This document shows, in pieces, positions 1 to 46,188 of a stretch of DNA of 64,000 bases. The notes beneath the pieces were generated by a model, which saw only the letters and a list, made by a program, of their open reading frames with translations, searched no databases and had not been told where the DNA came from. Made by a program: the position numbers and the translations under genes. The stretch is from Bugula neritina (Eukaryota; Animalia; Bryozoa). Every line of letters begins with the position of its first letter. Positions within the stretch are counted from its first letter, which is position 1. Location of the stretch: NCBI GenBank assembly GCA_964035545.1, contig OZ037770.1:14870642-14934641 (forward strand), in the 5' to 3' direction.

Positions 1-4
1 CCAG

Positions 5-24000: not shown

Positions 24001-27000
24001 GAGATCGGTAACGACCAGTTTGGAGCTCAGATTATGCTTCACGCTCCGAGAAAGAACGAGAATCTTGCGAGGGCTAAACTGTCGTACATTGAGGTTAACT
24101 ACGCTGGACAGGCGTTCAGGTGAATATACTCGTCTGCGTAATAAATTGAAACTGTAGACAGATTATATTTTTGCTTCCATTAATCTTTACTTAAGACAGA
24201 CTTCCAGGCTTACTTTTTCTATTTATTTCCTCGTTGTTTGTGGGATTTATTGGTGACGTTATGACTTAATTGTTTTTTTACTTATTTCCCAGTAGTTTGT
24301 ACGGTTTGGTAGGGATTTAAAAACAGTTAATTTTCTTATAGTCCTAAAGGTTTAACGCGACCATATCTGTCGTATAGTGCCTCAATGCTGTAATGATTGA
24401 AATTACAGGCTCGGCCGTTACCCAATCCACTTCCATCTGAACGGCGACATGAATGGCTCATACGTCAGAGGGTTGGCCATTCACGAAACGTTTAACAGAG
24501 CAGTGAACGTTCACGGCTCTCACAACATCCTCATTGAGCACACAGTCATCTACAATGTGATGGGTGGAGCCTTCTTCCTTGAGGATGGAATTGAAACTAA
24601 CAACCGATATGAGGTACAGAAAGTACATGAAAGTCTTAGTGTGTTGATGACAAAATTTGCTGACTTGAACATGTTTATTAAAAGCTGATTCATGTATTGA
24701 ACCTAGGCGATCCTTTTTTCATACCACTTTACGCCACTTTTTTTATCATTTTATATTTTCACACATTCAATAATAGATTTTTCATAACATACTTTATGTT
24801 ATTTATAAAAAATTGTTTATTCTGATTGTTTGTTAATTTATTTTTAGTAATTTTTTGATGGTTTGTGTACTTTCAGTACAACTTGGCGCTGTTTGTCAAA
24901 GCCAGTTCGAGTCTTCTCAACGATGACATCACGCCAGCTGCCTTCTGGGCGACAAACCCCGACAATCACTACAAGCACAACGCGGTGGCCGGAGGAACCC
25001 ACTTTGGCTGGTGGTACCGCCTCCTGGAGCACCCCGAGGGACCGAGCGCTACGGACACTGTCTGCCCACGACACGTGCCTCTTGGAGACAGTTACAACAA
25101 CTCAGGTATGTCCCACGAGTGTATAATATAAGTATACGTGTCTCACGGGTGTAAATTATAAGCATAAAAGTCTTAATGCAAGTAGAATGCTTACCCATTC
25201 AAAAACTATGCATGAGAAGTTTCAAATCAGCAACTGGCCCAGTTATTGTTTCACTCTAGATAACTTTCGGAATCAAAACCCTTATTTAAATTGAATTTCA
25301 TGAATGCTTTTAGCTGAGCGCATCTTATCAATAAGTACTTTGTTAATTTGTTTACAACAGCGACATAGTCTTGTAGTCGGCTGCTCATTTGTTTAGTTCA
25401 CTCCAATGGTTGGTTCGGCTTGTGGACCTTCCAGGATTACTATCCAATGGTTGGGGGCGGCTGTGACGCTACAGAGCCCGAGCCCGCTGTGTTTGAGAAG
25501 TTTATTGTGTGGAACTGTGAGAAAGGGCTAGAGTTTGTCAATGGCGGAGCTCTACAGTTCAAGGACTGTCTGCTGGTGGGTCTTTTGTGACTCGTAATGT
25601 TGAAATATTGGAAACTTCACAAAAATATGTCATCGTACTTCTTCAACATCACAGTGTGGCTGAACAAACGCGTTTTATAATCAATATAAAAATATGTCAG
25701 GGCCGTAAAAAGTTCATTGCATATGTGTACTCGTAATTTCGCTGTTAGCGCTCATAAACTGTTCCTTGTTCAATATCTTACGAGTTTTTGTAACTCGATG
25801 TAAAATTGTTGAAAATTTGAAAAAGCATATCCGTATGAGTTTTTTTTTTAAATAAATGCGTTCTATATGGAATATATAATTAATGTTTTGCACGAGGTCA
25901 ATTTTACTAGCTATTGCTACTCATAAACTAAGTATTGCTACTCGTAAACTGGATATTAAACTCGTAAACTGGTGAATATTTTAGGCCAACAACCATCTAT
26001 CAGGACTGGAAGGAAAGAGGACAATGAAACTGGGTTCTGAAGTGCCTTACACAGACCGAGGTCCCTTAATTAGGGACTCGGTGGTAGCTGCATACGTCCC
26101 GGGCCATGAGAACCAAGCCAGTTCTAAACTAGCAATTGTTCTCCCTTGGTCAGAAGGCTTCTCCATAAAGGTGAGTAGTTGTGTCACCAATCTCAGATAG
26201 TTGAAAGTCAAACATGCTGTATCTATTTTAATTTTTCTATGCATCTTCTTGCTGCATAGTCAACACAGACATTTATTCTCACCTAAATGGCGGATGTACT
26301 AGCACAGTCAATAATATTTTCTTACTATAAGAACATTATGTCACTTTCTTTAAAAAGTTGGATTTCAAGGCTACTAGCAGTTCCATTGATATTTTGTTAA
26401 TGGTAGCGATTTATAAAGCATTTTCTCTGGTTGTTAGAACACGGTATTCATCAACTATGACAGTAACACCAGCGTAGTATTTGGTATGACAACCATACAA
26501 GGTACTTGTTCGGAGCTCTGTGGGGCGTACAACTACCATGTGTCACAGTTACAGTTTGTCAACAGCAAGGATCATCTCGGTATGAGTCATGTATAATATG
26601 CCATTATTATTATTTTTCCGTGCTGCATTAACATTACTTGTTTAAAGATATTTTTAATAATAATAATCTTATGACAATGTGGGGGCACTTGAAAGAATTT
26701 TATTGACGTGATGGTTAAATATTTTCTTGTATCCATTAGTTTTATTTTTCAAGTTTTGAGCTGATTAATAGATATTATTGATTTTGTATCTGCATCAAAT
26801 TGCAGTCTTTCTCTGCCACAGTCAACCACATGACGACTCGGGCAGCTTAAGGAGTTTTCCTCTCGCTGCATATGCTCTAAAGTATAACCCAATAGTTTCC
26901 ATAACCCGTCATATGTTCATCAGCAATTAGAGTTTAAAAAATGGCTGACAAAACAGCTTGTATTTTTGTTACATTTTGTTGGCTGGACATTTTCATTTAA

Positions 27001-30000
27001 GGTATCGTTTGTCCACTGTGTACTAGTATCTTAATTCTTGCTCAATTTATGATTATGTGAATAACAAGACTCTCTGTTGCTTATGTCATTTCCTGTGCTG
27101 TACAGTGAACTTCCGTTGGAACTACGACGGCGTATTCCGTGACCTTGACGGGTCGTTGAGCGGTGTAGCCGGGGGTAACGTGCTCACTTGGACTGATACG
27201 CTTGACCCGAGCAAGTGTGTCAAGGATGATAGATTCAGTCAGGGAGCTGCACAGGGCGCCGTCTGCGATGAAACCACACAGTTCGCCAGACTCTCATTCA
27301 ATCAGTAAGTTTAGTGTGTTTTTTATTATGTTGTATTATATTATAATATAATATATGTTATTAGTTAAATATTTGATTTTATTATATTGTTACAATATTA
27401 ATGTAATCTAAAACTTTCTGTAATATATTATCACATTATTTTATAAACTATTATAATATATTACTCTTTTATATGATTATCATACGTTACTATTTATATT
27501 ATTGTATTTTATTGTATTATAACATTATATTGTTATACTATGTTGTTGTACTATTCCAGCCCGAACATGGAGTCGATGTTATTCAAGAACGTTCTCATGA
27601 CCAACGAGTTCGGATATCAAGTCGTTCCGTTTGCTGACAAGAGGATGACTCATAAAGCAGGTAACATAAGTCATGCCTGCCTCTTCAGCCAAAAAAATTA
27701 TCTGTTTCATTATGTTATCCAATAGAATACTATCTTAGATTACATGCTCCAATAGAATTATTGCTTAAATTATATAATCCAATAAAATAATCTCTTACAT
27801 TCTTTGCTCCAATGTAATAATGTGTTACTTTATGTACTTCAGTAGGTTATTGTTCTTGTTTACTGAAATGCAGTAACAGTATGTAGTATAACTTTATGTA
27901 AGGATACAGTATAATAATATTCACTTGTTTATTTTGTGAGATTGAGTGAATCTATGAAGTTGTTATGAAGTTGGATTTTGTAAACTAAATTGTAGAACAT
28001 TTAAACACAGCACACTAGATTATATAACACGAAACATTCATGTAATTGTACCTTATTTAGCAATGTTCGGATTTGGTGTGTAGTTCTGGATTAGTTGTAT
28101 GTAGATAAGAGTGTAGGTAGATAAGAGTGTAGGTAGATGGAAGTGTAGGTAGATGGAAGTGTAGGTAGATAAGAGTGTAGGTAGATGAAAGTGTAGGTAG
28201 ATAAGAGTGTAGGTAGATGAAAGTGTAGGTAGATGAAAGTGTAGGTAGATGAAAGTGTAGGTAGATGGAAGTGTAGGTAGATGGAAGTGAAGGTAGATGA
28301 AAGTGTAGGTAGATGAAAGTGTAGGTAGATAAGAGTGTAGGTAGATGAAAGTGTAGGTAGATGAAAGTGTAGGTAGATGAAAGTGTAGGTAGATGGAAGT
28401 GTAGGTAGATGAAAGTGTAGGTAGATTAAAGTGTAGGTAGAGAAAGAATTATTATGAATGTATGTCATATGCCCTTCTCTCTAGGTTGGACAGCCGTCGT
28501 GGAGATAGGTCAAGACTACGAGATGGCGTGGGAGAATATTGAGCATATCACCAACATCAGCTACGATGCCGGCTTTTATGACATGGTTTGTACTGGCATC
28601 ACATCAACAAATAGTCACATTTTATAATATGTACCTTGTATAATGACACAACACTTGTCTTTGAGTAACATACATTATATGTAATTGATAAGTAAATGAG
28701 AAATTGTATGTACGATTATAAAGGTTTAACATAACACTGGAGTTATAATATGTTAAACTTAATATTAACACGGGTATTTCACCCTTCTATCTGGTCATCT
28801 TCGGAATTGAGATAAAATAGTTTAACTACAAGCCTCAAGTTTCTAATTCCCTTAACATTAAGTGAGAGTATTGATTCGTAATTTTTGCCAATCGTAGCTT
28901 TTTTGTATTTCACTCAATTAAGAAGAGCATTTCTTATGCAGAATAATTTTATTTGATAGCTATTTGTATCCTGCAGTGAATTATTTGCATTCGAACCCAA
29001 ACCAGTTGGTAGTTAGTTTACTTTTGATCCGTTAGAAACCTTGACCTTGTTGTTTCAGAGCGGAGGAAATGTGATCATCACTCATAAGGTGGACGCTGAG
29101 CCCGACCGTGTAAACATCCTCGGCACACCCAGAGAACTCTCGGAGGGCTCCGAAAACCCCCTCAACTATAAACAGAACGTTCACGGAGACTTCTTCTACG
29201 ATAAGAACAATAAGAAAATTTCATACATGGGTAAGTTTTGTATGTAAGTTAATGTAAGTTAGTATGTGAGTCATTGTAAGTGAGTTAGTGTCACCTCTAC
29301 GTTAGAAAAGTTTGTGGCAGAGTATGTATCAGCTTTGTGCAGGAGAGTGTAGTCTCGTTTTGCATAACATTTCATTGCAAGACATGGTTGGTTACAGTGT
29401 CGGACATTAGCAGTAGAGATAAGAGAGAGACGGACAGGAAGTTCGTGGTGCAGAACGTCCAGCCCTCTGCGTACAAGTGCTACTGGCCAGACTGTCAGCC
29501 GCCCCCTGACCCCACCACCCAACCACCCAAAGACGCACGTCCCGATGTTGTTGACATCTGGAGTGACGGTTCCATATGGCCAACTGGCTCCAAACCAGAA
29601 CTTGGCGCGTCAGAAGTTGTCGTTCCTTTTGGTATGACATAGACAATTTTATTTTGACTGTTACGTTTGGTTACGGCAGCATTATGAGTCGGGTACCAAA
29701 GTGAGAGATTTGCATATTTTTTAAGCTTGGAAATGTTTTTGCATAATAGCGTGCGTTGTTTGTAAGCTGTGATTACTCTAATATCTGATTGTCCGTCTTA
29801 CCTTTAGATTACTCCATATTTTAACAAATTGGTCTTGAGAATATTGTATCGCACTATAAGAGCTAGAATAGTTGCCTCAGTTGATTCTGGGAGTTGTCTT
29901 CATGTTTGTACGAAACCCGCTGTTTCAGGACGCTGGATTTTTGTGAATGAGACGCTGATCCAGATTAAGAAGCTCTACATCGACGGAGTTATGGACGTGG

Positions 30001-33000
30001 ACAATACGGAGTCAGCAAACCTGGTGTTGGAAGTTGATTTCATGATCATCAGGGGTGGACGATTTATTGCTGGATTTGATGGTGGTGACATGTGAGTGTA
30101 TTTATAGTGTGAAAATTCGGAGTTGTGTTACCTGCAAGGGATGTCAGATTTCTTGTTAATTCTAGAGTTTTTTCGCTCTTTTCTATTTAGACGCTAGTCA
30201 TGTTTTATTTTTATTCATTTAAAAAACTAAAATTCTTAATTCAAAAAGAAGACAAGTTTTTGCATCTGCGCTGAAACCTGTAACAAACTGTTGTGTTATT
30301 TGCAGTTTTCTTTCATCGTGAGTTGTCACATGTCAAATGTGCATGCCATCGCATTGAGCTCTGCTTTAGTACACCCTAGTTTCTGTATCTTATAGATTCA
30401 AGGGCAACCTAGAGATCATACTGAATGGAGACGTCTATTCCGAGAGTGAAAAGGTGAACGGAGGACCTCCGGTAGGGGTCAAGGCCATTGGTAAGTAGGT
30501 CATCTCTGCCCTGTATTGGTTGGCTATAGCTATGTGAGACAGATATTAAGCTCCTTTCTAATTGGTCAGTTATGGCAGTCAAGGAATGTATATTTTTGTA
30601 TTTCTGTTGGGTTTGTTTCTTACCAGGAGGTCTTTAAATATCATGACTGTAACTTTTGTGCTAAATTTTCGTCATATTTCAGTTTTCAATGCCCAAAAGC
30701 TCCATTTTGTAACTCAATAAATAAATAAATACTACAATATACGATGGCTTATTATTTATTAATAAAAACACAACAAGCATTATATTCCCAATGCATATAA
30801 GATATATCTGACTCAACATGGAAACTGTTTTGTTCAACTGAGTTCTTCTAATTACACTGACTCTCTTGTACTTTAGTTGGTTGACTCTATTGCAGGCGTG
30901 TTTGGTGGGCTGGACTTACACGGAGTCGAAGTGAAGCCCGTTATTACTCATCTTGCTGCTACTGTTCAGAAGGGAGACTCCGACATCACCGTCGATGCTG
31001 ACGTGGAGGCATCGGGTTGGAAAGTGAGTCATTCAGTTCTGTTTATTATATTATATTGTATTTATTATATTATATTGTATTTATTATATTGTATTTATTA
31101 TATTGTATTTATTATATTGTATTGTATTTATTATATTATATTGTATTCATTATATTATATTGTATTTATTTTATTATTTTATATTCATTATTTTATATTG
31201 TATTTATTATATTATATTTCATGCATTATATTGTACTCTTTTATTTTATAATATATTATGTTTTATTATATTATTTTATGTTGTATTACATATTGTATTT
31301 TTAGAAAATATTATTTTGTATTTTTTCGATATACCATTGCGTTAATTTCGAACAAATATTAGTTTTAAATAATTTTATTTGACAATTCTATGTCTTTGAA
31401 TGAAAGATGTTATTTTTAGGTATCTGATAAAATCATGATAACTGCCACCACGTACGACGCACATCAGACAGAAATACGTACCATTTTCGCCATCAGTGAA
31501 GGAGCGATCACTTTGGACGAGCCACTGGAGTTCGGCCATCTTGGTTGGTTTTCTAGAACATGTCATTACATTGATTTGCGTTTGTGTATTACTGTAGGAC
31601 AGTTAGATTTTGCTCTACAATGTCTAATAAAGCATCTTGCCTACTTATACCACAACAATGTAGTACTTTTACATGTAGGTTATTGTTGATAGTCTGCTCA
31701 GTGCATTAACTTTGCATACACCAGGTGTATAATATGTAGTTTATATAGATTATATAATATAGTATATAGATTCTATAATATAGTATATAGATTATAAAAT
31801 ATAGCATATAGATTTTATTATATAGTATATAGATTCTATAATGTAGTATATAGATTCTATAATATAGTATATAGATTATATAATATAGTGTATAGATTCC
31901 ATAATATAGTTTATAGATTATATAATGTAGTATATAGATTCTTTAATATAAAATATGGATTCTCTGATATAAAATATATAGGTTCTATAGTCATACACAA
32001 GTATAAAAGATTTGTATGATAAAACATTTTCAAATATATCAGCCCACAGTATTTGTAGTCAAAACCTGCTCAAGGTATTATTAAAAGTCTGAGTGTATCA
32101 AACTAATGTGTAGGTGAGGTGATTACGGACGACAGCGGTGACGTCCACTACCTGGCGGCAGAAGTCGCCCTGCTCACTCGTAACATCGTCATAAGGAGTG
32201 GAGGTGATATCGAGGCTGCCAGGAAGGCAGGTCTGGGCGGAAGAGTGCTCGTGTCAGCTGCCAACTTCCCCGATAGCAACGGGGTTGATACAACGAGATT
32301 TGGTGAGGGCTGACGGACTCAACGTATACATACTTTGCTCTGTGCATGTTTGTCTGTCAAATAATTGTTACATACTGTACGTTTCTGCATAGTCGTGTGA
32401 CTATGTAACTTACTTCTAGAGGTGACTCACTTTAATGAGTAACTTACTTTAATGTGTCTTTAGCTACGCCGTAAGTGTAATATGTCTCACAGGATATTAT
32501 ATCTCTTGTGAGACAACACGAGTCCAATGTCAGAATTCATATTTAACTTGCTCAGTCTTTTTCAATGTGTGATTGTGAAGATTTCTCCGCAGCCCCTTGC
32601 ATGATTCTGGTTTACTGTATGTGCAATAAGGTGCAGTATATAGTATACTAAAGGTGCTATACACTATACTACCTGTTGTATAGTATATCATAAACAATGT
32701 GATCATACCATTGGTTTGCTTGCACCCAGGCTGGGCTAGAATCAGCTATACACAGTTCATCAACATGGGACAGTACGGCTACACAGAGGCCTTTGACCCA
32801 AGGTATGCCGTTGCCTACGTGGGCACTGGGGAAAATAGCAACATCCGCCCCTGCTTCTTGAAGGGAAATTCATTCGAGGATGGTTTCTCGCCTGCTATTG
32901 GTCTATTCGGTGCCGATGGCCATGATGTCATCAGCAATGTGATGTACAAAGTCGTGGGTGGAGGTGAGATACAACTACCAATTTTTAGTATAATACACAT

Positions 33001-36000
33001 ATCATTTGTTATACTCCTGTTTTTCATTTGCTGATGAATAAGAAAGTTAATGTCTTCTGAATGTTGCTTCAACTTTTAATTCTGAGTTGTTAGATTACTT
33101 TGGCCTTTGACTTGCTGAAAAATCTGTCTATACATGTCATCAGAGTTGTGAGAAACTCAAGTTTCTGCAGTCAGTTATTACTATTAAGGCTCAAAGTAAT
33201 TTATTCGGGAGTTTCAAGACTCTAGCTAGTCAAACTATAGTTACGTAGTACTACCAGAGCTAATGGTGTAATAACACAACCAGTTTACATGTGGATATAT
33301 ATGATATGATATTAATATGATTTGATATGATATTAATGTTGCTATGCAGGAATGGTAGTTGATGGCCGCGACCATTATGTCAAGGGCAACATGGTGGCCT
33401 TGAATCTCTGGCCAGGGTCATACGAAGGTCGAAGAGAACTGAAGAATGTCGCTTATGAGTCATCATTCGAACTGACTAAAGCCAGAGAGTCTAAATTCTA
33501 CGATAATATAGTTAGTTACTAGTATATAGTTACTAGTATATAGTTGCTAGTGTATAGTTACTAGTATATAATTACTAGTATATAGGTACTAGTATTTAGT
33601 TACTAGTATTTAGTTACTAGTATATAGTTACTAGTATATAGTTACTAGTATATAGTTACTAGTATATAGTTACTAGTATATAGTTACTAGTATATAGGTA
33701 CTAGTATTTAGTTACTAGTATATAGTATAGTTACTAGTATATAATGTAGTTACTAGCTGCACTTCCTGCGTATTACATCATTTCCTGTCATGTAGGCTGC
33801 TGGCTCCGAGAGGTCCGGATTTAGTTTGGCCGGTGAACTTTGTGAGGATGTGGATCCAGAGCTCTTGGGATGGAAAGGAAACAAAGTTCACTCTTCCATG
33901 TTTGGCGTCATGATTTGGAAAGAAGATACCCTTCCCGAGGAGTGTATCAGAATCTCTGGTGAGTCATTTATAGCACGTGAATAGCTACATTTGTATAGTG
34001 TAATGTAGCATACTATAGCACGTGAATAGCTACATGTGTATAGTATAATATGGCATACTATAGCACATTTTTAACTATAGTAAGTTGCTATGAAGGTTCT
34101 GTTAAAAGCATCACATGGGTTTCAGGTTTCACTGCTTGGAAGAACTTTGACTTTGGTATATTCATCGAGGCCTCCGTCATTCGCATTGAGTTTGAAGATA
34201 ATGACCTGATTGAGAACGGTCTGGGTCTCTGGACTCACACCTTTGGACACGGCTCACTGTCTCACTTTAGGAAGGAAAAGAGCATCTCTTTCAAGAGAGG
34301 TAAAATCAGCATTTCTCATCGTTTTAGTAATTCCTAACAAATAATGCTTATTACTAATCAAGTTTCTCCAATTTAGTAAAAGCGTCTGCATTGGCAGACA
34401 TCTGTAAAAAAAAGATGGAACTAGCATTTCTAACAATCTCTGTTTATCAATGGTTTTTATTTATCAAGCTTGTCTAATCTAAGAAAAAGACTGCATTTGT
34501 GAAAAATAAAAAATATGTCACTTAATGTGGAGATTAGGCTGGAAGTGCAGTTGACTTGTTGTTTTGGATCACAGGCTACGTGGCTGGAGCTACTCCATTC
34601 TTCGACTGTGAGAATGACGTCAAGCCGAGCACTGTGAGCTTTGAGCTCAGTGGTCTGGCCAGATCCTGGAGGAGTCCGAGTGGCGGTAACATGGGTTTCA
34701 GTATGCCCAACGCAGATGGAGCAAGCAACGGTCTACCAACTCATCCATTCAGAGGACGAATGGCTTATCCAACTTTGGACGCTAAGATGGACATTGACGG
34801 TAGGTGTCATTGCTTTACCGCAGACAAGAAATAACTCCACATAGATGTGTGTTTAACAAAGGAGAGCTGTGTGAAATATTACCTCAAAAAATAATTTTAT
34901 CCCTCTAATAGTAATAAGGCACAAGTTTGTATCTGTACCAGGTGTCTAGTTAATTTGAATTTGTGAATTTTCTCGGATTACTAATTACCTCTTCTCCTCT
35001 TCCCTTCTACCGTTGATGCTTTGTGTCTTTGCTTAGGAACTCGGTTTGCCCACTTTGGATCTCGAAGCTGTGACGGAAAGGACGTCATGGATTTCATCAT
35101 CAGCTCAAACATTGCCGCTGATGATGTCAACCACCCAGTAAACGTTCAGAATGTGGTTGTGGAGGACACCGTGGACTTTGACAATATCGCCTTCTTCCAC
35201 TCGCCTAACGTAGGGTAAGTGTAAATATGTATTCTTATGTCCCTTTACCTGCTAGTTACTAACTACTAGTTGCCAATTGCTAGTTGCTAATTGTTAGTTA
35301 CAAACTGTTAGTTGCTAGTTACTAGTTTGTTCTTGCTGATTGCCAATTGATGGTTGCTGATTATTAGTTGCCAGTTGCTGATTAGTAGTTGTCAGTTGAT
35401 ATTCAATAACTACTAGTTACTAGTTACTAGTTATTAATTGACAGTTAATTCGTGCTAGGGACCAGTTGCTAGTTGCTAGTTGCTCATTCTCACTGCACTT
35501 GAACTGTTGTATGAGAAAGAGGTTGTGTTGTAGGAAAGTCAACCCGTCAGACTGTGTGGACATGGAATGTGACGGGCATAAGAAGAGTCTGATTCACGAT
35601 CTGGACGGAACTCTACTTGGTAAGCTTTGTTTAGACCTACCAGCTTGTGAGTTTAACTGTTGATTGGCAAATATTTCGTTGATTAGGGTGTGGTAATATA
35701 TGGCTAGTTGCAAGGGTGTTGTAACCTAATTTTTTGAATAGTTTTTGGAAGTCAGAAAACTTGTCTCAGCTAGTCCAATTGAATCATTTTTGTGTGTCAC
35801 TTTGTTGCTTATAAAGTTACTAATTAATATTTTATTCAACTATTGGGTTATGCATGAACTGCCCGTTGTTTGTGTTCAGTATTCGCCGATTGTGGCTAAT
35901 TTTCATGCCAGCATCACTCTGTGCTCATTCTGTGCCGGTTGTTTACAGTCTTGTACACGTAATGACTCATACAGGTTGTAGGTGCCCTGTGTTAGCTTAT

Positions 36001-39000
36001 ATAGGTCATGTTTGTGTTATCTAGGTCAGTCTGGCGGAACTGTGTTGGATGATGCAGAAGTGAATTGGGACGGAGACGCCAGATATGGTATCGGTGACTA
36101 CAGAATACCGAAGGTCATGCTAACCTTCCCCAACAGCACCACGTTCGATCCTCCCAAGAAACACGGTGAGAATATATCTGAGACGCCATTCTATTGGTTC
36201 TTGCATGGCGACATTAGCTCAAGCGTAACAAGCATACTTCTGTGTTAAAATGTCAAGGTTGTTTGCGTTTGAAGGTATTTACCGAGACAACACGTGCACC
36301 TACATTGACAGCTGGCAGGCGTACCACTGCACAGGACCCAAGTACCGCATGCTCGTCATCGAGTCTATGGACAAGGACACCGAAGTGCGTAGACTTTCTC
36401 CCATAGGTCTCAAGGCTAGGACTGAAGATGGGGGCTACATGGACCTCCTCAACGGGCCTCAGGATCATGGCTGGTGCGCTGGCTATACTTGCCAGAAGAG
36501 AATCTCAACCTTCTGGGCTGTCGTTGCTGATGGTATGCTATAAATAGTTCTGCTATGCTATAAATAGTCATTGTTGTACTATAAATAGCAATCATGTTAT
36601 AAATAATTATTTTCAGTGGTAATCTGGTGAATATATTGAAACATTTTATTCTGTATTTACCGAATTGCTCATGCCTTACTTTATGTATCTTGCAACAGTG
36701 TATTACTTCACGAGTATCGCGTATCACACTGATGTTTTCTTCACTGAGCTCTCCAACTCACTGTATAGTTAAACATTGAGCTCTGCCCTAACCCAGGTGT
36801 GACCTTTGATGTCTACCTGACCGGCACCAACCCCCAACACACCAGGTTCTTCATGCTGCAAGCCGAGGAGGATGAGAGAGTCAGACTGGCCGTCTATTAC
36901 TTCTCTCCTCAGAGACTCGACGTCTTCAAGGACGACATCTACATCTACCCGACTAACGCTGAGATCACAGGAGACGGCAACTACAACCTCAAGGTGAACC
37001 CTTTACTACGAATCAGTAATACATAGCACAAGGAGAGAAAAATAACTAGGTGTCATCTACTTGATGGCACAAAGTCTGTAGTTGAAATTTTAGAGAGTCG
37101 ATTCTGGCTGCTAGAAGTTGTTTACTTTGAACGTTCCGTAGCCTTCTCTAGTCGATGGCTTGTTTAGCGGCAGTTTCCTGTTTATCTAGAACTCATCCAA
37201 TCTGAGTTTCTCACAGAACTTAACAAACTGGCAGGAATGTGACAGGGAAAATATTTTACTTTCACTTTTTAGGTGTCCACTCAAACTCCCTCGGAATATA
37301 TTCCCGATATCGATGCCGCTGCCGGCCAGAACTACTTTGACAGAGAATGGCAGCTCCAATACCTCATACTCAAAGGTTAGTTTCTTAAATCTATCACTAT
37401 TGGCTAAATAAATGTAATATCCATTCCCATTGGCTACAGAGGTGCTACCTTTTGATTGGCTCTGTGCCTCTCAATTTGGCAAACAAATGAAGCAGTTTCA
37501 ATATTTCCTTTTATATCAACAACCTAGCAGTAAACTAAAACTTGCCTAGTGGTTTTTTTAGACATAAGCGATTGAATTCACTTATCATTTAATATTTTTC
37601 AATTACATAACTCTTAGCTCATTCAAATTGTAATGTTACCAAATTAAATGTCACCGTATTAGTCTAATCTCTCACCCTATTGGTCTAATGTATCACCCTA
37701 TTGGTCTAATGTATCACCCTATTGGTCTAATGTATCACCCTATTGGTCTATTGTGTCACAGGAACTGCTGTCGTGGACGTGATTATCAAGGAGGTCGTAC
37801 TCGTGTCACTGACTTTACCGCCGATGACTATTGACGATTTCTTTGGAGAGAAGGTAGTTGGGAACTTGGCAGCATTCCTCGGCATCCCGCCTGAGAAGAT
37901 AAGAATTGTAGACGTGGTCAGCGAGGCCACCAACAGACGAAAACGTGACGTCTCTGGAACCACAATCCAGTTTGAGATAGGTAAGTTCTGAGTCTAATAA
38001 TATAGCTGTGATTCTGTTTTTTTGTTATTAAATTGCCACACTTTATGTAGAGAGTTTTGGGAAATTCATTGCTGTTTCCTTGTGAACAATAAAGCTTATG
38101 TTTAGAAATTTAAGACTGTTATTGCATTATGTATTTTGTTGATTTTTTCTAGATGTTCAAAGATTTTTTCTTACACACCTTAGTAACCTCTTTTCTCATA
38201 ACTGGTGTCATATTTCTTTAGCCGACGCCCCTGTTTCTGGTACGAATGTTACCAACGTGAATGACGGAGATCTCGATCGATCTAAGTTGCTCAACTTGAC
38301 CCGGAAGGTCGTAGACTCGGTGCAACTTGGTACACTCGGCGAGTCCCTCAACCTCACCATCCTTGGCATTGATGTCCAAGAGCCTCTTCCAATACCAGAA
38401 AGTATGTAGCGCTGTTAGTTATCTCTGTGTGTTACCAGAGAGTATACAGTTCTATTAGTTATATCTGTGTGTTACCAGAGAGTATATATCTCTGTTAGTT
38501 ATATCTGTGTGTTACCAGAGAGTATATATCTCTGTTAGTTATATCTGTGTGTTACCAGAGAGTATATATCTCTGTTAGTTATATCTGTGTGTTACCAGAG
38601 AGTATATATCTCTGTTAGTTATATCTGTGTGTTACCAGAGAGTATATATCTCTGTTAGTTATATCTGTGTGTTACCAGAGAGTATATAGTTCCATTGGTT
38701 ATATCTGTGTGTTACCAGAAAGTATACAGTCAGATGTTAAGATACAATAGACTGTTATGTTTATAACAAATTCATTTCTTTGTAAAAAAAACCTAATATC
38801 TGTAGTCTGTATATTGTATAGAGATACAAAGAGTATAATATACATAGTCTGTATATTGTATAGAGGTACAAAGAGTATAATATACATAGTCTGTAAATTG
38901 TATAGAGGTACAAAGAGTATAAAGCGTTTGTTCTCTCTCCACAGACTCGACTGACTCTAGCTGGGCTCTCCTTACTAACGGCAGCGATGTTTTGGCAGCC

Positions 39001-42000
39001 ATCCAAATTCCGAGTGAGATGGAGTACACCACTGAGTTGGTGGCTGACCGTGAGCAGCAGCCTTTCCCCACTCAACCCGAGTTTTCTATGTACGACGCCA
39101 ATGTAAGTAGTACTCACTGTTAGTAGTACTCACTATGAGTCACTGTTAGTAGTAATCACTATCAGTCACTGTTAGTAATACTCATTATCAGTCACTGTTA
39201 GTAATACTCACTATCAGTCACTGTTAGTAGTAATCACTATCAGTCACTGTTAGTAGTAATCACTATCAGTCACTGTCAGTAATACCCATTATCAGTCACT
39301 GTTAGTAATACTCACTATCAGTCACTGTTAGTAGTAGCCACTGAAACCAGTGTTATACTCTAAAGGTAAGCACTAGTCATTGTATAGTTCTTCTATCAAT
39401 CCCTAATATTATAATAAATCTCTTCGCTGTTCTCAGATGGAGCTGGTGGAAATCCTTGGCTCCCGGGGTGACCCGTGGAAGATCCGAGCTGTCCTTGACA
39501 CCAATGCGGCCACTTATCCCACAGCCACTCTGATTGGAGAAACTACCTGTGGGTTCATTGACGGTGTCTGCGCTTTTGAGACTCTGGGCATCTCCCACCA
39601 GGGTTCTGGCTACGTCATCAGTAAGCTCTTTATCTGCTAGTATATATACATATCTGTCGGTGTACTGCTGATAGACCTAGAGCTGATTACTAATGATTTC
39701 TTGTTAAACTATGACTTCAGCACTAATAGAATATCTTGTTTGAATCAGAGCTCCGTGTTCATTTTGCAGTTCTAGTTAGCTGTAAGAGTTCTGAGATTTT
39801 ATATTTTTAATGATTGTCTATTCCGCAGGTCAATTCTTTACTTTACCTCAAGATAGTTTCCTATTTTTCCCATACTGTCTTATGTAATTGTGTAGCAGTA
39901 CACTGTACACCATCTACACTGTACATCATCTACACTGTACGTCACCTACACTGTACGCCATCTAAACTGTACACCATCTACACTGTACGTCACCTACACT
40001 GTACACCATCTACACTGTACACCATCTAAACTGTACATCATCTACACTGTACACCATTTACACTGTACGCCATCTACACTGTACGTCATCTACACTGTAC
40101 ACCATTTCTGTCTGGCAGAGTTTGAAGTATTTGACCCAAGTGAAGCTTCATTTGTTGCCACAAGCGCTTCTATCACCGTGAAGGAGGCAGCACTGAGTTC
40201 AGGCTTCACCTCTGTACCGGACAAAGACATGCCCGTCATGGTGAACGAGACATTCACAGCTGTCGTGGACATCCGGGATCTTTCCTCACAAATGGTAGTC
40301 GAAGATATTGGCTGGAATGTAAGTTTAACTCTTTTTATCAGGTCATGTGACTTCTGAATCTCATGATCAGGTCATGTGACTTTTTAATCTTTTGATCAGG
40401 TCATGTGACTTCTGAATCTCTTGATCAAGTCATGTGACTTCTGAATCTCTTGATCTGATGAATATGGTATTTCTTACGGTTGCTTACATAAAAACCCTTA
40501 TGAACTTATAATCTCTAAGAAATTCTGGTGGAAAAGTTTCTAACAACCTAAGGACTTTTTACTATTCTGTTAAAGGAGCAACTATGACTGGATGCCCTTC
40601 CTAACATCACCTTTACCAAGATTTGAACTACTGATCTTGTGTTTACTATACCAGTGCCACAACCTACAGCAGCTCATGTTGTGGTTGCTGACAGATTTAT
40701 TAGTAGTTTGCAGAATTGTGTTTAAAATGACCTGATAATAAGAAATGTGTCCCCCTCCCTCTTTCCTTATGAAGTGGTGTGATTTCAAATCCCTTGAGTG
40801 GAAGGCAGGTTTATAGGTTTTTTCACTCTTCAACTTTCAGAATGACGTCTGGACGGCTACCATCTCCATATACAGTCCGGAAATTTCTCCCGACACTCAG
40901 CTCCTCGGAACTCTGGAAAAATCATTCGATGTCGCGAGTGGACTCGCTACTTTTGATGATCTTCAAATCACCACCAGGGGAAGGTATGCTGTGTTAGATA
41001 TACCTGTCTAGAGATACTTGTAGTAGAGATACTTGTAGTCGAGATACTTGTAGTAGAGATACTGGTGTAGAGATACTTGCAGTAGAGATACTTGTAGCAG
41101 AGATACTTGGGTAGAGATACTTGGGTATGTAGGAAGTAGTCACTCTATTTGAACTGTTTTTAGGTATTCACTGAAAGCTGATGTCAAATCTGCCACTAAA
41201 ACTTTGACTGCTGGTAGATCAGCCGTGTTTGAAGTTAAGGAAAGTAAGTTGGTATTTATATTATCATTATTATGTAATATATTTTATTATAATATATAAT
41301 TTATTATGTGATATATAATATAATTTATTGTATGAATAGTTTATTATACATATATTATATAATTTATAATAATATAATTTATTATCTTGTACTATTTGAT
41401 TTATACTGTGGATATATATCATAACTTACTATATTGTACTATAGAAGTTATATGATTTTGTAATTCTGTAATTTGTTTCACTTCAATTTATTGTCCTTTA
41501 TTTTATGTGTTATATTGCATTACATTGCAATATATTATTTTGTATCGCAATGCTTTATATTTTAATGTAGTGCAGTGTAATGCATTTTATTGCACTACAA
41601 TACACCGCAATACAATATATTACACTGAACTATATTTCAGACGTAACCATGCAGGAGGAGGAAGTAAGCTACAAGTTTAGCCTAAGATTCGACGCAGACT
41701 ACTCCATGTATGCTGAGGACCAAGAAGACATCGTTGAGGCCTCATTCTATAACTTCCTTCTCTCCATTGATGATTCGGCCAGATATCACGACTTTTCCAT
41801 CAGTGAGGGTGAGGCAACTCTATATTCTACCTGACGTATGCTTCAATTATATAAACTGAATTTTTATAAAACAAAAAATTCAGGCAAATATTCTATTTAT
41901 TGGGCTACAAGGGTTTTTATAATGTCATTAGTTACAAACCCGTTGGTTTTTAAATATTCTTATGAGCTATTTGAATGAAATTTGTTTACATTCTATACAA

Positions 42001-45000
42001 TGTAATAAAACATATCATTATGTAGTCAAATTACAAAACTGTTTTCCTTTTTTCTCTTTGGTTTGAAATATGTATCTATATCCTCACACATACGCATGCA
42101 TAATGTCTCGGTTTCCAGGAAGTATATGTATGTATATAAATATATATAATGTCTCGGTTTTCAGGAAGTATCCTCATAGATTTCTGGGCTTCGGGAGAGA
42201 CCGAGGCACTATTGACTATCATCGACACAATCGAAGGCTCCGTTGTCAACGGAACATCTCTCAATCTGCCCGGGGTTGTCCTTGAGCTTGACAAGTACAT
42301 GAAACTGGATGACGTCGTGTACGGTGGCCTTGATGGGGTGAGTAGTTTCTATTGTTTGTGGCGTCTCATGCTAGTCACAGCTGTTTACTCTTACCATAAG
42401 CCAGGAAATGTAGAGCTATTGTGATTAATCAGTGCAATCATGCTTTATGGTATCTCGAAATGACAATGCCCTAGTTTTTGTTTGGGGTAGGATATCGCGA
42501 AACTCCACTAACATGCAGACTGTGTTATGCGTAGTGGAATATGTATGAAATGCATGTCAATAGGGAATTTATTGTTACAGTTTTCATTTTTCCTTTTGCT
42601 GCATTTCAAATTTTGAAATAGTTAATCTGTTTTCCCATATTTTGATTGTAAAAAAGCGATTCTAGCAATTCTTAGTTGTATAATCTTTTGAACTGCTTGT
42701 AATTCTTTACAAAAGTTCAACCACCGGTACCTAAGCGCTGCTTAATAACTGTTGATATATATGAAGATCAAATATATTCGTGATCACTTTCTACATTGCA
42801 TACTTCTACTTCAGACCACAACTATCTCTACAACATCCGCAGATGTTGATGTTACTGCAGTAAGTCGTTGGACATCATTGTTTCTGGCACTGCTTGCTTA
42901 CACTTTCGTTACTTGTTTATCACCGTTTGGCCTTTGCTGATATATTTTGCATCCAAAAGGCGAACATTGTTAAAGTGGTTTAGTTTAGAGGACCTAGTAG
43001 TCACATTTTAAAGTATCGTAGCTTAATAGGCGAGTAGTATGTGCTATTCTAAGCATCTGAAACTGAAAATGTCGGCTCGTGGAAGTTCAACTTTGGCAAG
43101 TCATTTCTACCAAGGTTCAGGTAAACTATATGCTATGTAATGTAAGACAAATCAAAGTAAATTAATTGTTTGAAAAAAGTCGTTGAAACCTTCTATTTAT
43201 TATGGTTTATTATTATTTAATGCTATTTATTATTATAGGAAGTAAAATATAATTTTCATTTTCTTTCTGGTACAATCTAGGAAGTTAATTTGATTTTGCT
43301 AGCTTTTAATTATCAATTGCTTTGAAGTTGTTGATAGTTTAGCAGCGCTATTTTTTTTATATCATTATTATTTTATTTTCTTGTTTTATATAATTTATAC
43401 TTTAGTTCAGCTAATTTACTACAATATTAATGAAGCATGGAATGTCCTATTAAATTCGAAATTATTCAAAGTTTCTCTCATTTTGTAGTGCAGTTTTTAA
43501 TTAAAACAGTATTTTTATTTGAATCTTAAATATAAACTTGAAATATATTTGTAGAATGAGGATCCTACTTCTGCTGCTCGTGTCATCACCCCAATTATTG
43601 TAATTTCATTGCTGGTTACGCTTCTGGCTCTCTCTACGGCTATCATATGCTTTGTCAAGATCAAAACGCGCAAAAGTGAGTGAGCTACTGATTCATTAGT
43701 CTTTTATAATTGCTGATATGTGCTTCAATTTTAAACACGACTGCATCACAAATCAAATAAGGATGTTATGTTTTTATTTTTTTAGGATTGCAAAAAGTTG
43801 GAGATAGTGTGATCTACCCTTGTGAGTATCATGTTTAGTTTTAATTTCAATCCCAACCTCATTAATTTTATTATATATATTTAGTGAAAATGTAATAATA
43901 AAAATGCTATAATATTTCCACATCCAAAACTAGCTAATGATTATCATATTTTTTAAAATAGTGAAATTTTATTTAACTGCATATTTCTAGATAGTGGTTG
44001 TTTAAACAAACCATCTAATTTCTGAACGCTTCAATGGAATAAATTATCAGATATTTATCAAACCTACATTTATTTTATTATGGCACTAATGCTGGTGTTT
44101 ATTTCATAATGTTACAATATTTTTCTCTTACAGCCAAGATTGACGAGGAGTCTGCAGTGAACCTAAGATCCACCAGCAGGACCGAGTCTCCCATGGGCTA
44201 TGAAACCTATCAAACCAAATCATAATTTCTATGGACGCTTGATTTTCAGATGATTTATTTTATTTTTTTACCTTTTTTATTTTTAGAAGAATGTCTTGTT
44301 TTTCTTTTTCTGAAATGTTTTTTCTGAATCTTGACTTTTGGAACTTGAATTTTTTTATTCTTCAACTGTAAGAATAATTTGCTTTACTGTATTTTTCTTC
44401 TCTATTTCTGAATAAAATGCATTTCAGATGTTGCAGTGAGTTTCACTCTATTCGGTTTCAAGCAAATTAGCTTTGACTTCTTGGCTGTATGTTTTATCAG
44501 TCTTTATGTGTGTCTGTTTTTTTAATTAACAGAGAAAACGTGGGTTCAACAGCTTTTTGTGATTTCTGTAACATATAAAATATCTAAAACTAATTGTTTG
44601 GCATGTGATCGTACAACTCTTGAGCCCTATCAAAGCTCAAAGCTTGTGAAATTACAAAACCTGAAGCCAGAGATGATTCATTAGTGTCATTATATATTAT
44701 ATGCACCTGTTTGGATACATTATACCATGAATGATTTTTGTCGGTTGCTGGAACATTTGGTTATAGGTAACAAAGCATAGTAGTGGATGAACTAGTTGTC
44801 TTATTCCAATTAGTAGCATCAGTTTTATTTGATGCAAATGTTTATTGGGTTGAGTACTCTGGGTGAGAATGTTTCAATGGTATGAATTACGAGATACCTT
44901 GATACAAGTTTAAACTAGTTGTAGTAGTATATATATTTAGCTCTGTATTTGCTTGCAATAATGATTACATACCTATCTAGTAAGTATGAATTATTCACAC

Positions 45001-45973
45001 TGTTTTCTAGAAAAAAGATTTTTAGCAATGCTACTTTTATTAGGACAATCCTTACTACTGCAAGTCGACAGTAACTAAGTATTGTGCTCCTATCTTTTTT
45101 TTATATTGAAAAGCTGGTTTTATTGTGACAAACGTAAATTTTAAGAGTTCGCATTTACCTATCACCTCAGTAAGATATTTTCTTCGATCTACTTTCCAGG
45201 CAGAGGAAATTGATGAAGTGGAAACAACTACCCTGGATGTAGCCAAGCCAAACCAAACAACCATCATCATAGCTGTGGTCATTTCTGCTACCCTCGTCTT
45301 GGTTGCTGCAGTCATCCTTATAGTTGTCATTTCCAAGAAGAAGTCGTGTGAGTCTTATAGAATTATGTGTTACTACATCCTGCCGAGAAATCCGATGCAA
45401 TCTGTTAACTAGTTAGATTAGCTATTATCTATAGACTATTTGAAACTTGTATACTCAAACGATATTGCTTTACAATAAATTTTATGCGAGCATATCTTGA
45501 ATTGATTCGGAATTTCTAAAAGCTTACTGATAAAGTTCCAGTTTGCTTTGAATTACACGGGGTTATAAAACTAATATAGTAATTATTGCTAACTTTCATA
45601 ACATGCTATTCTTAATCACTAAGCTGGTTTGAAATTTTAAGCTTTTAAGCTATTTAGTTATTATATTTTTAGCATAAATTTGTGCATATATTCAGCAGCC
45701 AAAACTGCATTTTGGTAAAAAAGATTGACAACGTTCACAGCAGATAGGTCATATTTTTCTTTTGTTGGCTTAAACTAAAAAAATAAGATTTAACGTAAAC
45801 TGTGAACAATATGATGCTTCATTATACATAGTTGAAAATTATTATCTGAACTTTTAGCCAAGACCTATCACAGCGATACTGAAATGAGAGCTGGTGTCAG
45901 TGGAACTACCCCGCCTCCAGAAAATTCTGCAGCACCCACTCCAAAGGGAGAAGCTCCAACTAAATCGGCTTAG
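5..45973 (+). CDS. PKHD1L1: Fibrocystin-L / PKHD1-like 1 homolog, multi-exon, 5' end outside window, alternative 3' ends
   Basis: Exons read by eye with AG/GT boundaries: 5-143, 449-560, 917-1068, 3152-3199, 3801-3991, 4126-4323, 4886-4971, 5420-5562, 6040-6106, 6378-6470, 7018-7105, 7510-7692, 8344-8484, 8756-8922, 9033-9132, 9527-9630, 9881-9993, 10235-10401, 10634-10807, 11061-11182, 11615-11779, 11936-12087, 12276-12349, 12603-13121, 13302-13512, 13755-13875, 14414-14534, 14869-14932, 15309-15427, 15670-15846, 16039-16224, 16485-16624, 17049-17193, 17565-17797, 17942-18131, 18551-18726, 19096-19221, 19495-19588, 19980-20153, 20318-20467, 20769-20946, 21385-21535, 21807-21963, 22575-22784, 23155-23371, 23799-24119, 24409-24613, 24877-25105, 25397-25576, 25985-26170, 26438-26579, 27106-27304, 27560-27660, 28485-28585, 29059-29230, 29398-29631, 29929-30091, 30396-30490, 30896-31023, 31420-31543, 32114-32302, 32730-32963, 33350-33510, 33796-33958, 34126-34299, 34575-34799, 35037-35214, 35534-35619, 36025-36165, 36275-36532, 36797-36993, 37273-37375, 37762-37980, 38222-38401, 38945-39102, 39437-39620, 40118-40318, 40841-40983, 41164-41243, 41641-41808, 42165-42337, then terminal exons listed separately. 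Family-diagnostic peptides: ACPDGFDPGEFATQTCFQGRFGDEIGNDQFGAQIM, AGQAFRLGRYPIHFH, VNPSDCVDMECDG, NGPQDHGWCAGYTCQKRISTF, RRKR. Confidence 0.95.
3992..4088 (+). repeat. 34-bp tandem repeat x3 starting at a splice donor
   Basis: Units at 3992, 4026, 4060 begin GTGAGT/GTAAGT. Confidence 0.85.
4126..7105 (+). CDS. PKHD1L1: PKHD1L1 exons: IPT/TIG domain followed by PA14 domain
   Basis: EVTGISPTEGSTAGGQLLTITGTGF...ITCRTP (IPT); GGRGL; GYLTPKITGDYRFYIKCDDASKLYLS...LVAGESYYME (PA14 signature). Confidence 0.85.
4328..4592 (+). repeat. 38-bp minisatellite x7 immediately after a donor
   Basis: agggcttatacagtagcttgtggagagatatgatgtgt units. Confidence 0.9.
5030..5292. repeat. AT-rich minisatellite (tattactacaata-like)
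   Basis: Directly visible; source of Y/I/T-rich spurious ORFs. Confidence 0.85.
6463..6678 (+). repeat. 36-bp tandem repeat x6 spanning an exon end and donor
   Basis: (atatggag)gtaagataactcctgtaatcagctga units with donor-like copies at 6471, 6507, 6543, 6579, 6615, 6651. Confidence 0.9.
7727..8065. repeat. (GAGT)n microsatellite
   Basis: Long GTGA array in an intron. Confidence 0.95.
12276..21535 (+). CDS. PKHD1L1: PKHD1L1 exons: long IPT/TIG repeat array with a cupredoxin-like insert
   Basis: Repeated SPxxGSxxGGTxVTITGxGF...CxVxxxSxTEIxCxT motifs over many exons (e.g. 12603-13121, 17049-17193, 20769-20946); insert ITINTGDIVRFQW...FEHQFNDVGTFYY in 14869-15846. Confidence 0.9.
20151..20211 (+). 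repeat. 17-bp repeat x4 containing CAG|GTAAC junction
   Basis: caggtaacttgtctgtg units at 20151, 20168, 20185, 20202. Confidence 0.85.
21807..27660 (+). CDS. PKHD1L1: PKHD1L1 exons: first G8 domain and parallel beta-helix (PbH1/CEMIP-like) region
   Basis: DVWSSVYTWGG...ILIVNGGKLTVGTEEKPF...LPIYGAKCLAVREGELNLHG (G8); FNRAVNVHGSHN...GAFFLEDGIE; AAFWATNPDN...AGGTHFGWWY. Confidence 0.92.
22000..22260. repeat. Degenerate (CACT/CATT)n microsatellite
   Basis: Directly visible. Confidence 0.8.
23369..23555 (+). repeat. 25-bp minisatellite spanning an exon end and donor
   Basis: cga|gttagtgtctatttcctccttg units. Confidence 0.9.
28100..28441. repeat. 16-bp minisatellite (gtaggtagatgaaagt)
   Basis: About 21 copies, ending about 45 nt before an acceptor. 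Confidence 0.9.
29398..37375 (+). CDS. PKHD1L1: PKHD1L1 exons: second G8 domain and second beta-helix region
   Basis: WSDGSIWP...IIRGGRFIAG...VKAIGVFGGLDLHG; AAEVALLTRNIVI; GQYGYTEAFDPRY; AAGSERSGF; GIGDYRIPKVML; ESMDKDTEVRRLSP. Confidence 0.92.
33506..33756 (+). repeat. 14-bp minisatellite (atagttactagtat) starting at a donor
   Basis: Unit contains the ATA|GTTA junction sequence of the exon ending at 33510. Confidence 0.85.
38393..38727 (+). repeat. 40-bp minisatellite (about 9 copies) spanning an exon end and donor, followed by a 46-bp repeat near 38800-38925
   Basis: taccagaaa|gtat junction recurs as taccagagagtat every 40 bp. Confidence 0.9.
39103..39342 (+). repeat. 26-bp minisatellite starting at a donor
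   Basis: cagtcactgttagtaatactcactat-like units. Confidence 0.85.
39897..40106. repeat. 16-bp minisatellite (ctacactgtacaccat) abutting an acceptor
   Basis: Directly visible; ends about 10 nt before the AG at 40116-40117. Confidence 0.85.
42815..42940 (+). CDS. PKHD1L1: PKHD1L1 Thr-rich stalk exon (42815-42859) with in-frame read-through to a hydrophobic, GPI-signal-like C-terminus
   Basis: Phase-0 acceptor cttcag|ACC matches phase-0 donor at 42337; TTTISTTSADVDVTA then GCA|GTAAGT donor at 42860; read-through gives VSRWTSLFLALLAYTFVTCLSPFGLC*. Confidence 0.6.
   Translation, partial: TTTISTTSADVDVTAVSRWTSLFLALLAYTFVTCLSPFGLC
43555..44225 (+). CDS. PKHD1L1: PKHD1L1 terminal cassette 1: TM exon plus two cytoplasmic-tail exons
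   Basis: Exons 43555-43675 (phase 0 to 1), 43786-43821, 44134-44225 translate to NEDPTSAARVITPIIVISLLVTLLALSTAIICFVKIKTRKRLQKVGDSVIYPSKIDEESAVNLRSTSRTESPMGYETYQTKS*; TM followed by basic residues. Confidence 0.8.
44411..44416 (+). terminator. Candidate polyadenylation signal for cassette 1
   Basis: AATAAA about 185 nt after the TAA at 44225, after a T-rich UTR. Confidence 0.55.
45200..45973 (+). CDS. PKHD1L1: PKHD1L1 terminal cassette 2: TM exon plus cytoplasmic-tail exon
   Basis: Exons 45200-45347 (phase 0 to 1) and 45858-45973 translate to AEEIDEVETTTLDVAKPNQTTIIIAVVISATLVLVAAVILIVVISKKKSSKTYHSDTEMRAGVSGTTPPPENSAAPTPKGEAPTKSA*. Confidence 0.75.
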
Positions 45974-46182
45974 AGAAATACAAAGTCTATGAAAGACAAC
46001 TTACTCTCCATATCTCTTGACTCAAGTTACTAAGCTTTTCGTGTACTATTGTAATGTGTGACTGTTTTCTTGCTTTTTTATTGGTAATGTGCATATCCGT
46101 CCATATTAACAAAGATGTTTATTTTTAACAAGCTTTTTATGTTTTTTTACCAAGCTAAAGATAAATTGTTTTATTTTTAACA

Positions 46183-46188
46183 AATAAA
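46183..46188 (+). terminator. Candidate polyadenylation signal for cassette 2
   Basis: AATAAA about 210 nt after the TAG at 45973, followed by a GT-rich tract. Confidence 0.55.

Follow-up and report, generated by a model that had tools for sequence, protein, structure and literature searches.

A Bugula neritina fibrocystin-L gene with two predicted alternative membrane-anchor and tail cassettes

IgM and NCAM switch a transmembrane (TM) form for a secreted or GPI form. An earlier sequence-only reading of the locus described here had named both as precedents; NRP2a/b and LAMP2A/B/C, which exchange one TM and tail for another, are the closer systems. NRP2a and NRP2b have their ectodomain in common but differ in their juxtamembrane, TM and cytoplasmic parts (PMC8070368), and in LAMP2A, B and C alternative last exons supply different TMs and tails (PMC10549195). 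In Drosophila Dscam1, 17.1 and 17.2 are alternative TM exons (PMC7685093). For the fibrocystin-L family itself, the sequence-only reading had stated that vertebrate PKHD1L1 has one TM and a very short tail, which agrees with the published descriptions of one TM and a tail of 8–9 aa (PMC6707252, PMC13424714). We describe here the 3′ end of a fibrocystin-L gene of Bugula neritina, at which one ectodomain may be joined to either of two TM and tail cassettes.

The window, by which we mean the whole 64,000-nt stretch that was analysed (C6:14870642-14934641), belongs to a 216-Mb genome of 321 contigs. From base 1 to 42337 its plus strand is occupied by a gene which, named from its best hits and domain order, is a member of the fibrocystin-L (PKHD1L1) family and whose 5′ start lies upstream of the window. 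The ectodomain exons (TIG/IPT repeats, G8 and β-helix region; 1..41808, plus strand) were traced by Pfam, collinear tblastn and an exon chain that is in frame throughout from 31420 to 42337. IPT/TIG repeats (PF01833, E = 2.3e-31) were found in two stretches of the ORF at 12584-13291, and tblastn with full-length homologues gave numerous TIG matches across 4100 to 20900. The G8 domain (PF10162) lies inside the window at about 22550-22795, above the Pfam cut-off; the β-helix match (PF24606, E = 1e-4) is under its own Pfam cut-off. The tblastn matches are collinear with residues 197-4422 of a 4925-aa Owenia homologue, and the named top matches that were looked up are all fibrocystin-L-like. Judged from the length of its homologues, the ectodomain would exceed 4,000 aa, and a putative first exon for a signal peptide (L016:6362-6443) is found some 3.6 kb upstream of the window. 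Protein searches returned no full-length bryozoan fibrocystin-L among their matches. The only other chromosomal fibrocystin-L gene that we found is a paralogue on the minus strand of C3 at about 27.316-27.338 Mb (L005), which has the same layout: a last ectodomain exon of phase 1 to 0, then a TM exon of phase 0 to 1. Elsewhere in the genome, contigs C133, C141 and C261 carry intronless tandem G8-domain genes, many of them with in-frame TAA/TAG only; these look like ciliate-code sequence, from an epibiont or an assembly contaminant. Within the window, about 56800-59660 is taken up by a purine-skewed tandem repeat and then by an ORF that weakly matches RVT_2 (copia-type reverse transcriptase) at 59052-59660.

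For comparison we used contigs L009-L013, whose mutual identity is 99.3–100%, against 76–88% between them and non-coding stretches of the window. We infer that they represent a sister lineage, probably a further sibling species in the B. neritina complex; the COI divergence among the types of this complex is 8–11.5% (PMC4183541). The top exon match, L008, was considered as a close relative and rejected, being not closely related.

All features of the 3′ end lie on the plus strand. The last shared ectodomain exon (42165..42337, phase 1 to 0; 91% identical in the sister lineage) is followed by a 45-nt Thr/Ser-rich stalk exon (42815..42859, phase 0 to 0) that carries the presumed branch donor. 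This shared phase-0 donor is in phase with two TM exons, each followed by a tail, a stop and a poly(A) signal of its own. Cassette 1 begins with the TM1 exon (43555..43675, phase 0 to 1), which has a weak AT-rich acceptor and encodes a conserved Cys near the cytoplasmic end of the TM. It continues with a 36-nt tail exon (43786..43821, phase 1 to 1) that can be skipped without a frameshift, and with a last coding exon (44134..44225, stop 44223-44225) that ends in the Tyr-containing GYETY; its AATAAA lies at 44411..44416. In the sister lineage the 36-nt exon has 2 synonymous changes and 1 non-synonymous change, and its donor is kept (GTGAGT/GTAAGT). Cassette 2 comprises the TM2 exon (45200..45347, phase 0 to 1), with a strong acceptor, an acidic Thr-rich juxtamembrane stalk and no in-frame Met, and a last coding exon (45858..45973, stop 45971-45973) encoding a Pro/Thr-rich tail; its AATAAA (46183..46188) lies within a conserved U-rich block identical at 85 of 90 nt. 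The best 19-aa hydropathy is 2.79 for TM1 and 3.30 for TM2, and the predicted tails measure 48 aa (36 aa without the 36-nt exon) in cassette 1 and 43 aa in cassette 2. Every predicted isoform would have one TM, as is the family trait of a single C-terminal TM. On recheck, all coordinates, phases, stops and both AATAAA signals of the sequence-only reading were correct, and so was its statement that the two TM exons cannot be joined in series; we found a TM1-to-TM2 splice to be out of frame. We also scanned blindly for open exons bounded by AG and GT that encode a TM followed by basic residues, over 188 kb in all, counting the two strands of the window and of a 30-kb stretch at the paralogue. 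Because the scan gave just TM1, TM2, the TM exon of the paralogue and one tandem-repeat artefact, the two TM exons are not products of chance.

Several further elements lie in or near this region. At the last ectodomain exon the acceptor occurs as a tandem duplicate (42100-42171), with a spacing of 46 nt (49 nt in L010) and a second AG upstream in both lineages. In the TM2 intron, at about 45418-45614, lies a dispersed repeat roughly 200 nt long, of which there are at least 40 copies; the same intron in L010 holds an extra element (L010:3428-3752), roughly 325 nt long with inverted ends of 69 nt, which is absent from L009. Downstream, 0.7 kb past the second AATAAA, lies the first exon (46865-47195) of a fringe glycosyltransferase gene, which is syntenic in L010. 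We rejected cassette 2 as a part of this gene: cassette 2 has its own stop and AATAAA, and fringe has its own ATG and anchor.

The sequence-only reading had asked whether related genomes conserve both cassettes, and the sister lineage does: L010 keeps every acceptor and donor of both, together with both AATAAA signals. Its exon indels are all multiples of three, namely a 3-nt deletion in the stalk exon (leaving 42 nt), a 3-nt insertion in the TM2 exon and a 6-nt insertion in the last exon of cassette 2. Site counting between the window and L010, a comparison of two closely related lineages only, gave pS 0.24, pN 0.055 and dN/dS 0.19 for cassette 1 (Fisher p = 1e-4) and pS 0.25, pN 0.048 and dN/dS 0.16 for cassette 2 (Fisher p = 2e-5). 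For the tails alone, dN/dS is 0.13 and 0.09, respectively, and the last coding exon of cassette 2 has pS 0.225 and pN 0.025. In both cassettes synonymous changes exceed non-synonymous ones in the proposed frame alone; the other frames have no such excess. Because of this low dN/dS in the proposed frame, the frame-keeping indels and the conserved splice sites, both cassettes are, as judged from sequence comparison, working coding sequence under purifying selection. It is thus scarcely credible that one of the cassettes is a relic in decay, or that its reading frame arose by chance. The TM1 acceptor does score poorly, and the two lineages are close enough that decay could be recent, but a pN of about 0.05 against a pS of about 0.25 in each cassette, together with a sister lineage free of frameshift, stop or splice-site loss, largely refutes that reading.

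The question is then which gene owns cassette 2. Since an in-frame Met is lacking in TM2, its coding sequence must be entered from an upstream exon that ends in phase 0, and this exon could in principle belong to a separate small membrane-protein gene (about 90–100 aa) with its own promoter and with a start exon either in the 770-nt spacer between the cassettes or at ATG 43130. TM2 and its tail do form a complete conserved unit, and the spacer contains conserved donor-like sites, strong at 44436 (25 nt after the cassette-1 AATAAA) and at 44863, with another at 44980. The start that the sequence-only reading had itself raised as a rival, ATG|GTATGA at 44877, exists in the window and is phase-compatible, but the sister lineage reads ATG|ATATCT; we rejected this start exon because its donor GT is lost there. 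We listed all ATGs, donors and acceptors conserved in both lineages between 42338 and 45150, and the 770-nt spacer contains no conserved ATG with a phase-0 donor, or two-exon chain, that feeds TM2: its conserved ATGs (44428 and 44961) are in phase 2 or 1, with no conserved exon bridging to phase 0. A 27-nt micro-exon at 45044-45070 was likewise rejected, its acceptor being different in the sister lineage. A reasonable start candidate is the conserved ATG 43130 with a phase-0 donor after 43141, in the intron between the stalk exon and TM1, which could serve an internal promoter; a further one, at 43937, is weak and encodes a peptide that is not conserved. The block around ATG 43130 (43087-43147) is itself conserved and may contain a 21-nt phase-0 micro-exon (43121-43141) or a start exon from that ATG. 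With the TM2 exon as query we obtained two genomic fragments (86% identity), whose contigs are those of the sister lineage (L009-L013), and a profile search for longer TM-containing proteins gave these two fragments only. Protein searches, in which the matches were genomic fragments, contained no small spliced TM2 protein, which is in itself weak evidence, and the genome contains no second copy of TM2. The phases of TM2, moreover, match those of the TM exon of the paralogue. A separate gene is therefore unlikely on these grounds. Because the rival start is lost in the sister lineage, the spacer has no conserved start exon and TM2 has no in-frame Met, cassette 2 is most likely a part of the fibrocystin-L gene: we put the probability at roughly 0.8 that it is an alternative terminal TM and tail cassette, reached by a predicted splice to TM2. 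Neither the protein searches nor metagenome scans with the TM2 exon and the last ectodomain exon, which gave no match, turned up a record derived from cDNA. The comparative data thus favour the proposal of the sequence-only reading that one ectodomain has two alternative ends.

The ends could also be combined more freely. In one such scheme, TM1 and TM2 would be mutually exclusive internal exons in the manner of Dscam1 17.1/17.2, and TM1 would often be spliced to the last exon of cassette 2, either directly or by way of the 36-nt exon or a 39-nt block (44941-44979). That splice is in frame, and the 39-nt block, bounded by AG and GTAAGT, is open in phase 1 in both lineages. Against the scheme, the last exon, stop and AATAAA of cassette 1 are under purifying selection (tail dN/dS 0.13), so this exon is in use, and with clustering taken into account the 39-nt block is not significantly conserved (p 0.10–0.24). 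We hold the scheme to be very unlikely as the usual mode, and a TM1 product with the cassette-2 tail is possible as a minor one. The 39-nt block belongs to a stretch conserved at 81 of 85 nt (44925-45009) and may be an extra exon or a regulatory pseudo-exon; it is also open in phase 2 in both lineages, and in phase 0 it stops after five residues. A regulated anchor switchboard with more than two outputs can be imagined: TM1 or TM2, the optional 36-nt exon, TM1 with either tail, and a secreted ectodomain when the 39-nt block is read from the stalk. We regard such a switchboard as doubtful; if it existed, the various forms would bring fibrocystin-L to different kinds of ciliated or secretory cell in the colony. 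Another spacer block, 44771-44847, folds slightly better than its shuffles (z −2.1).

We return to the reading that we prefer, a fibrocystin-L gene with two alternative ends, and to its place in the family. The Bugula gene resembles vertebrate PKHD1L1 in its ectodomain of TIG repeats, G8 and β-helix and in one C-terminal TM per product, but it has two TM exons where the vertebrate gene has one, and its tails (36–48 and 43 aa) are longer than the vertebrate 8–9 aa. Tails of 36–48 aa are not unusual, because in most of the invertebrate fibrocystin-L models that we retrieved the tail measures from tens to hundreds of residues; the 8–9-aa tail characterises vertebrates and not the family as a whole. 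Among RefSeq isoform sets from Clavelina, Asterias, Patiria, Nematostella, two fishes and canids, the TM is constant, and the part after it varies in Clavelina and canids. In the C3 paralogue, a scan of 23 kb past the last ectodomain exon gave a single TM exon; the tail is multi-exon. This TM exon has a faint similarity to TM2 (shuffle p = 0.013) and starts in the same way as TM1. DNA similarity between the two cassettes is nowhere significant; they may have arisen by duplication of one TM exon. The sequence-only reading knew of no description of dual anchors in fibrocystin-L, and our searches on PKHD1L1 isoforms, invertebrate fibrocystin-L and PKHD1L1 in Bryozoa found no title or abstract that reports alternative anchors.

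Compared with the known anchor-swapping systems, the predicted arrangement comes close to NRP2a/NRP2b, in which juxtamembrane part, TM and tail are swapped together by alternative splicing on an identical ectodomain and the ends are barely alike (11% identity in NRP2). The ectodomains are unrelated, and for NRP2 the isoforms have been demonstrated at the RNA and protein level, with distinct functions, whereas the Bugula junction is predicted. With LAMP2A/B/C it shares alternative last exons that bring their own TM and tail to one luminal domain; LAMP2, however, has three ends, each a single exon with a tail of about 12 aa, in contrast to two multi-exon cassettes with tails of 36–48 aa. The LAMP2 Tyr motifs are of the form GYxxx, and cassette 1 ends in GYETY, which is placed 4 residues short of the C-terminus and whose sorting role is putative. 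Dscam1 17.1/17.2 offers an invertebrate giant ectodomain with two alternative TM/juxtamembrane exons, but these are internal, mutually exclusive exons with a common tail; in Bugula each TM has its own conserved tail, stop and AATAAA. Because NRP2a/NRP2b and LAMP2A/B/C already swap one TM and tail for another, the mechanism would not be new; it is its occurrence in fibrocystin-L for which we found no report.

We propose a plausible mechanism for the choice between the two ends. One fibrocystin-L gene would give two type I membrane proteins with an identical ectodomain. The phase-0 donor of the stalk exon, or that of the preceding exon, would be spliced to TM1 and the cassette-1 tail, with polyadenylation near 44411; alternatively, cassette 1 would be skipped as a whole, the donor joined to TM2 and the RNA ended near 46183. 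Isoform 1 would have the juxtamembrane Cys and a tail with conserved tyrosines; in isoform 2 the stalk would be longer, acidic and Thr-rich, and the 43-aa tail rich in Pro and Thr. With a splice-site matrix trained on 24 exons of the fibrocystin-L gene (training acceptors 2.7–16.2 bits), the TM1 acceptor scores −0.5 bits, under all training sites, and the TM2 acceptor 8.1 bits. This difference fits the most likely basis of the choice: the proximal end, with a weak TM1 acceptor and a poly(A) site, would compete with the distal end, where the TM2 acceptor is strong. A weak proximal terminal exon with its own poly(A) site set against a strong distal one is the pattern of calcitonin/CGRP. It may be speculated that U1 at the conserved donor-like site 44436 could dampen the cassette-1 poly(A) site. 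Looping out of cassette 1 by long-range RNA stems was rejected: the best stem (−24.5 kcal/mol) does not beat those of shuffles (−23 to −29), and the sites differ between the two lineages. By analogy with LAMP2 and Dscam1, the likely purpose would be either to direct the ectodomain to distinct membrane domains or types of cell or to alter its turnover.

The predicted dual-anchor fibrocystin-L has so far been found in two close Bugula lineages only. The tail of vertebrate fibrocystin-L has 8–9 residues, in contrast to the long tail of fibrocystin, with its ciliary targeting motif (PMC13424714). Two anchors and tails kept under selection on one ectodomain would offer a natural comparison for what the tail does in sorting, turnover or signalling.
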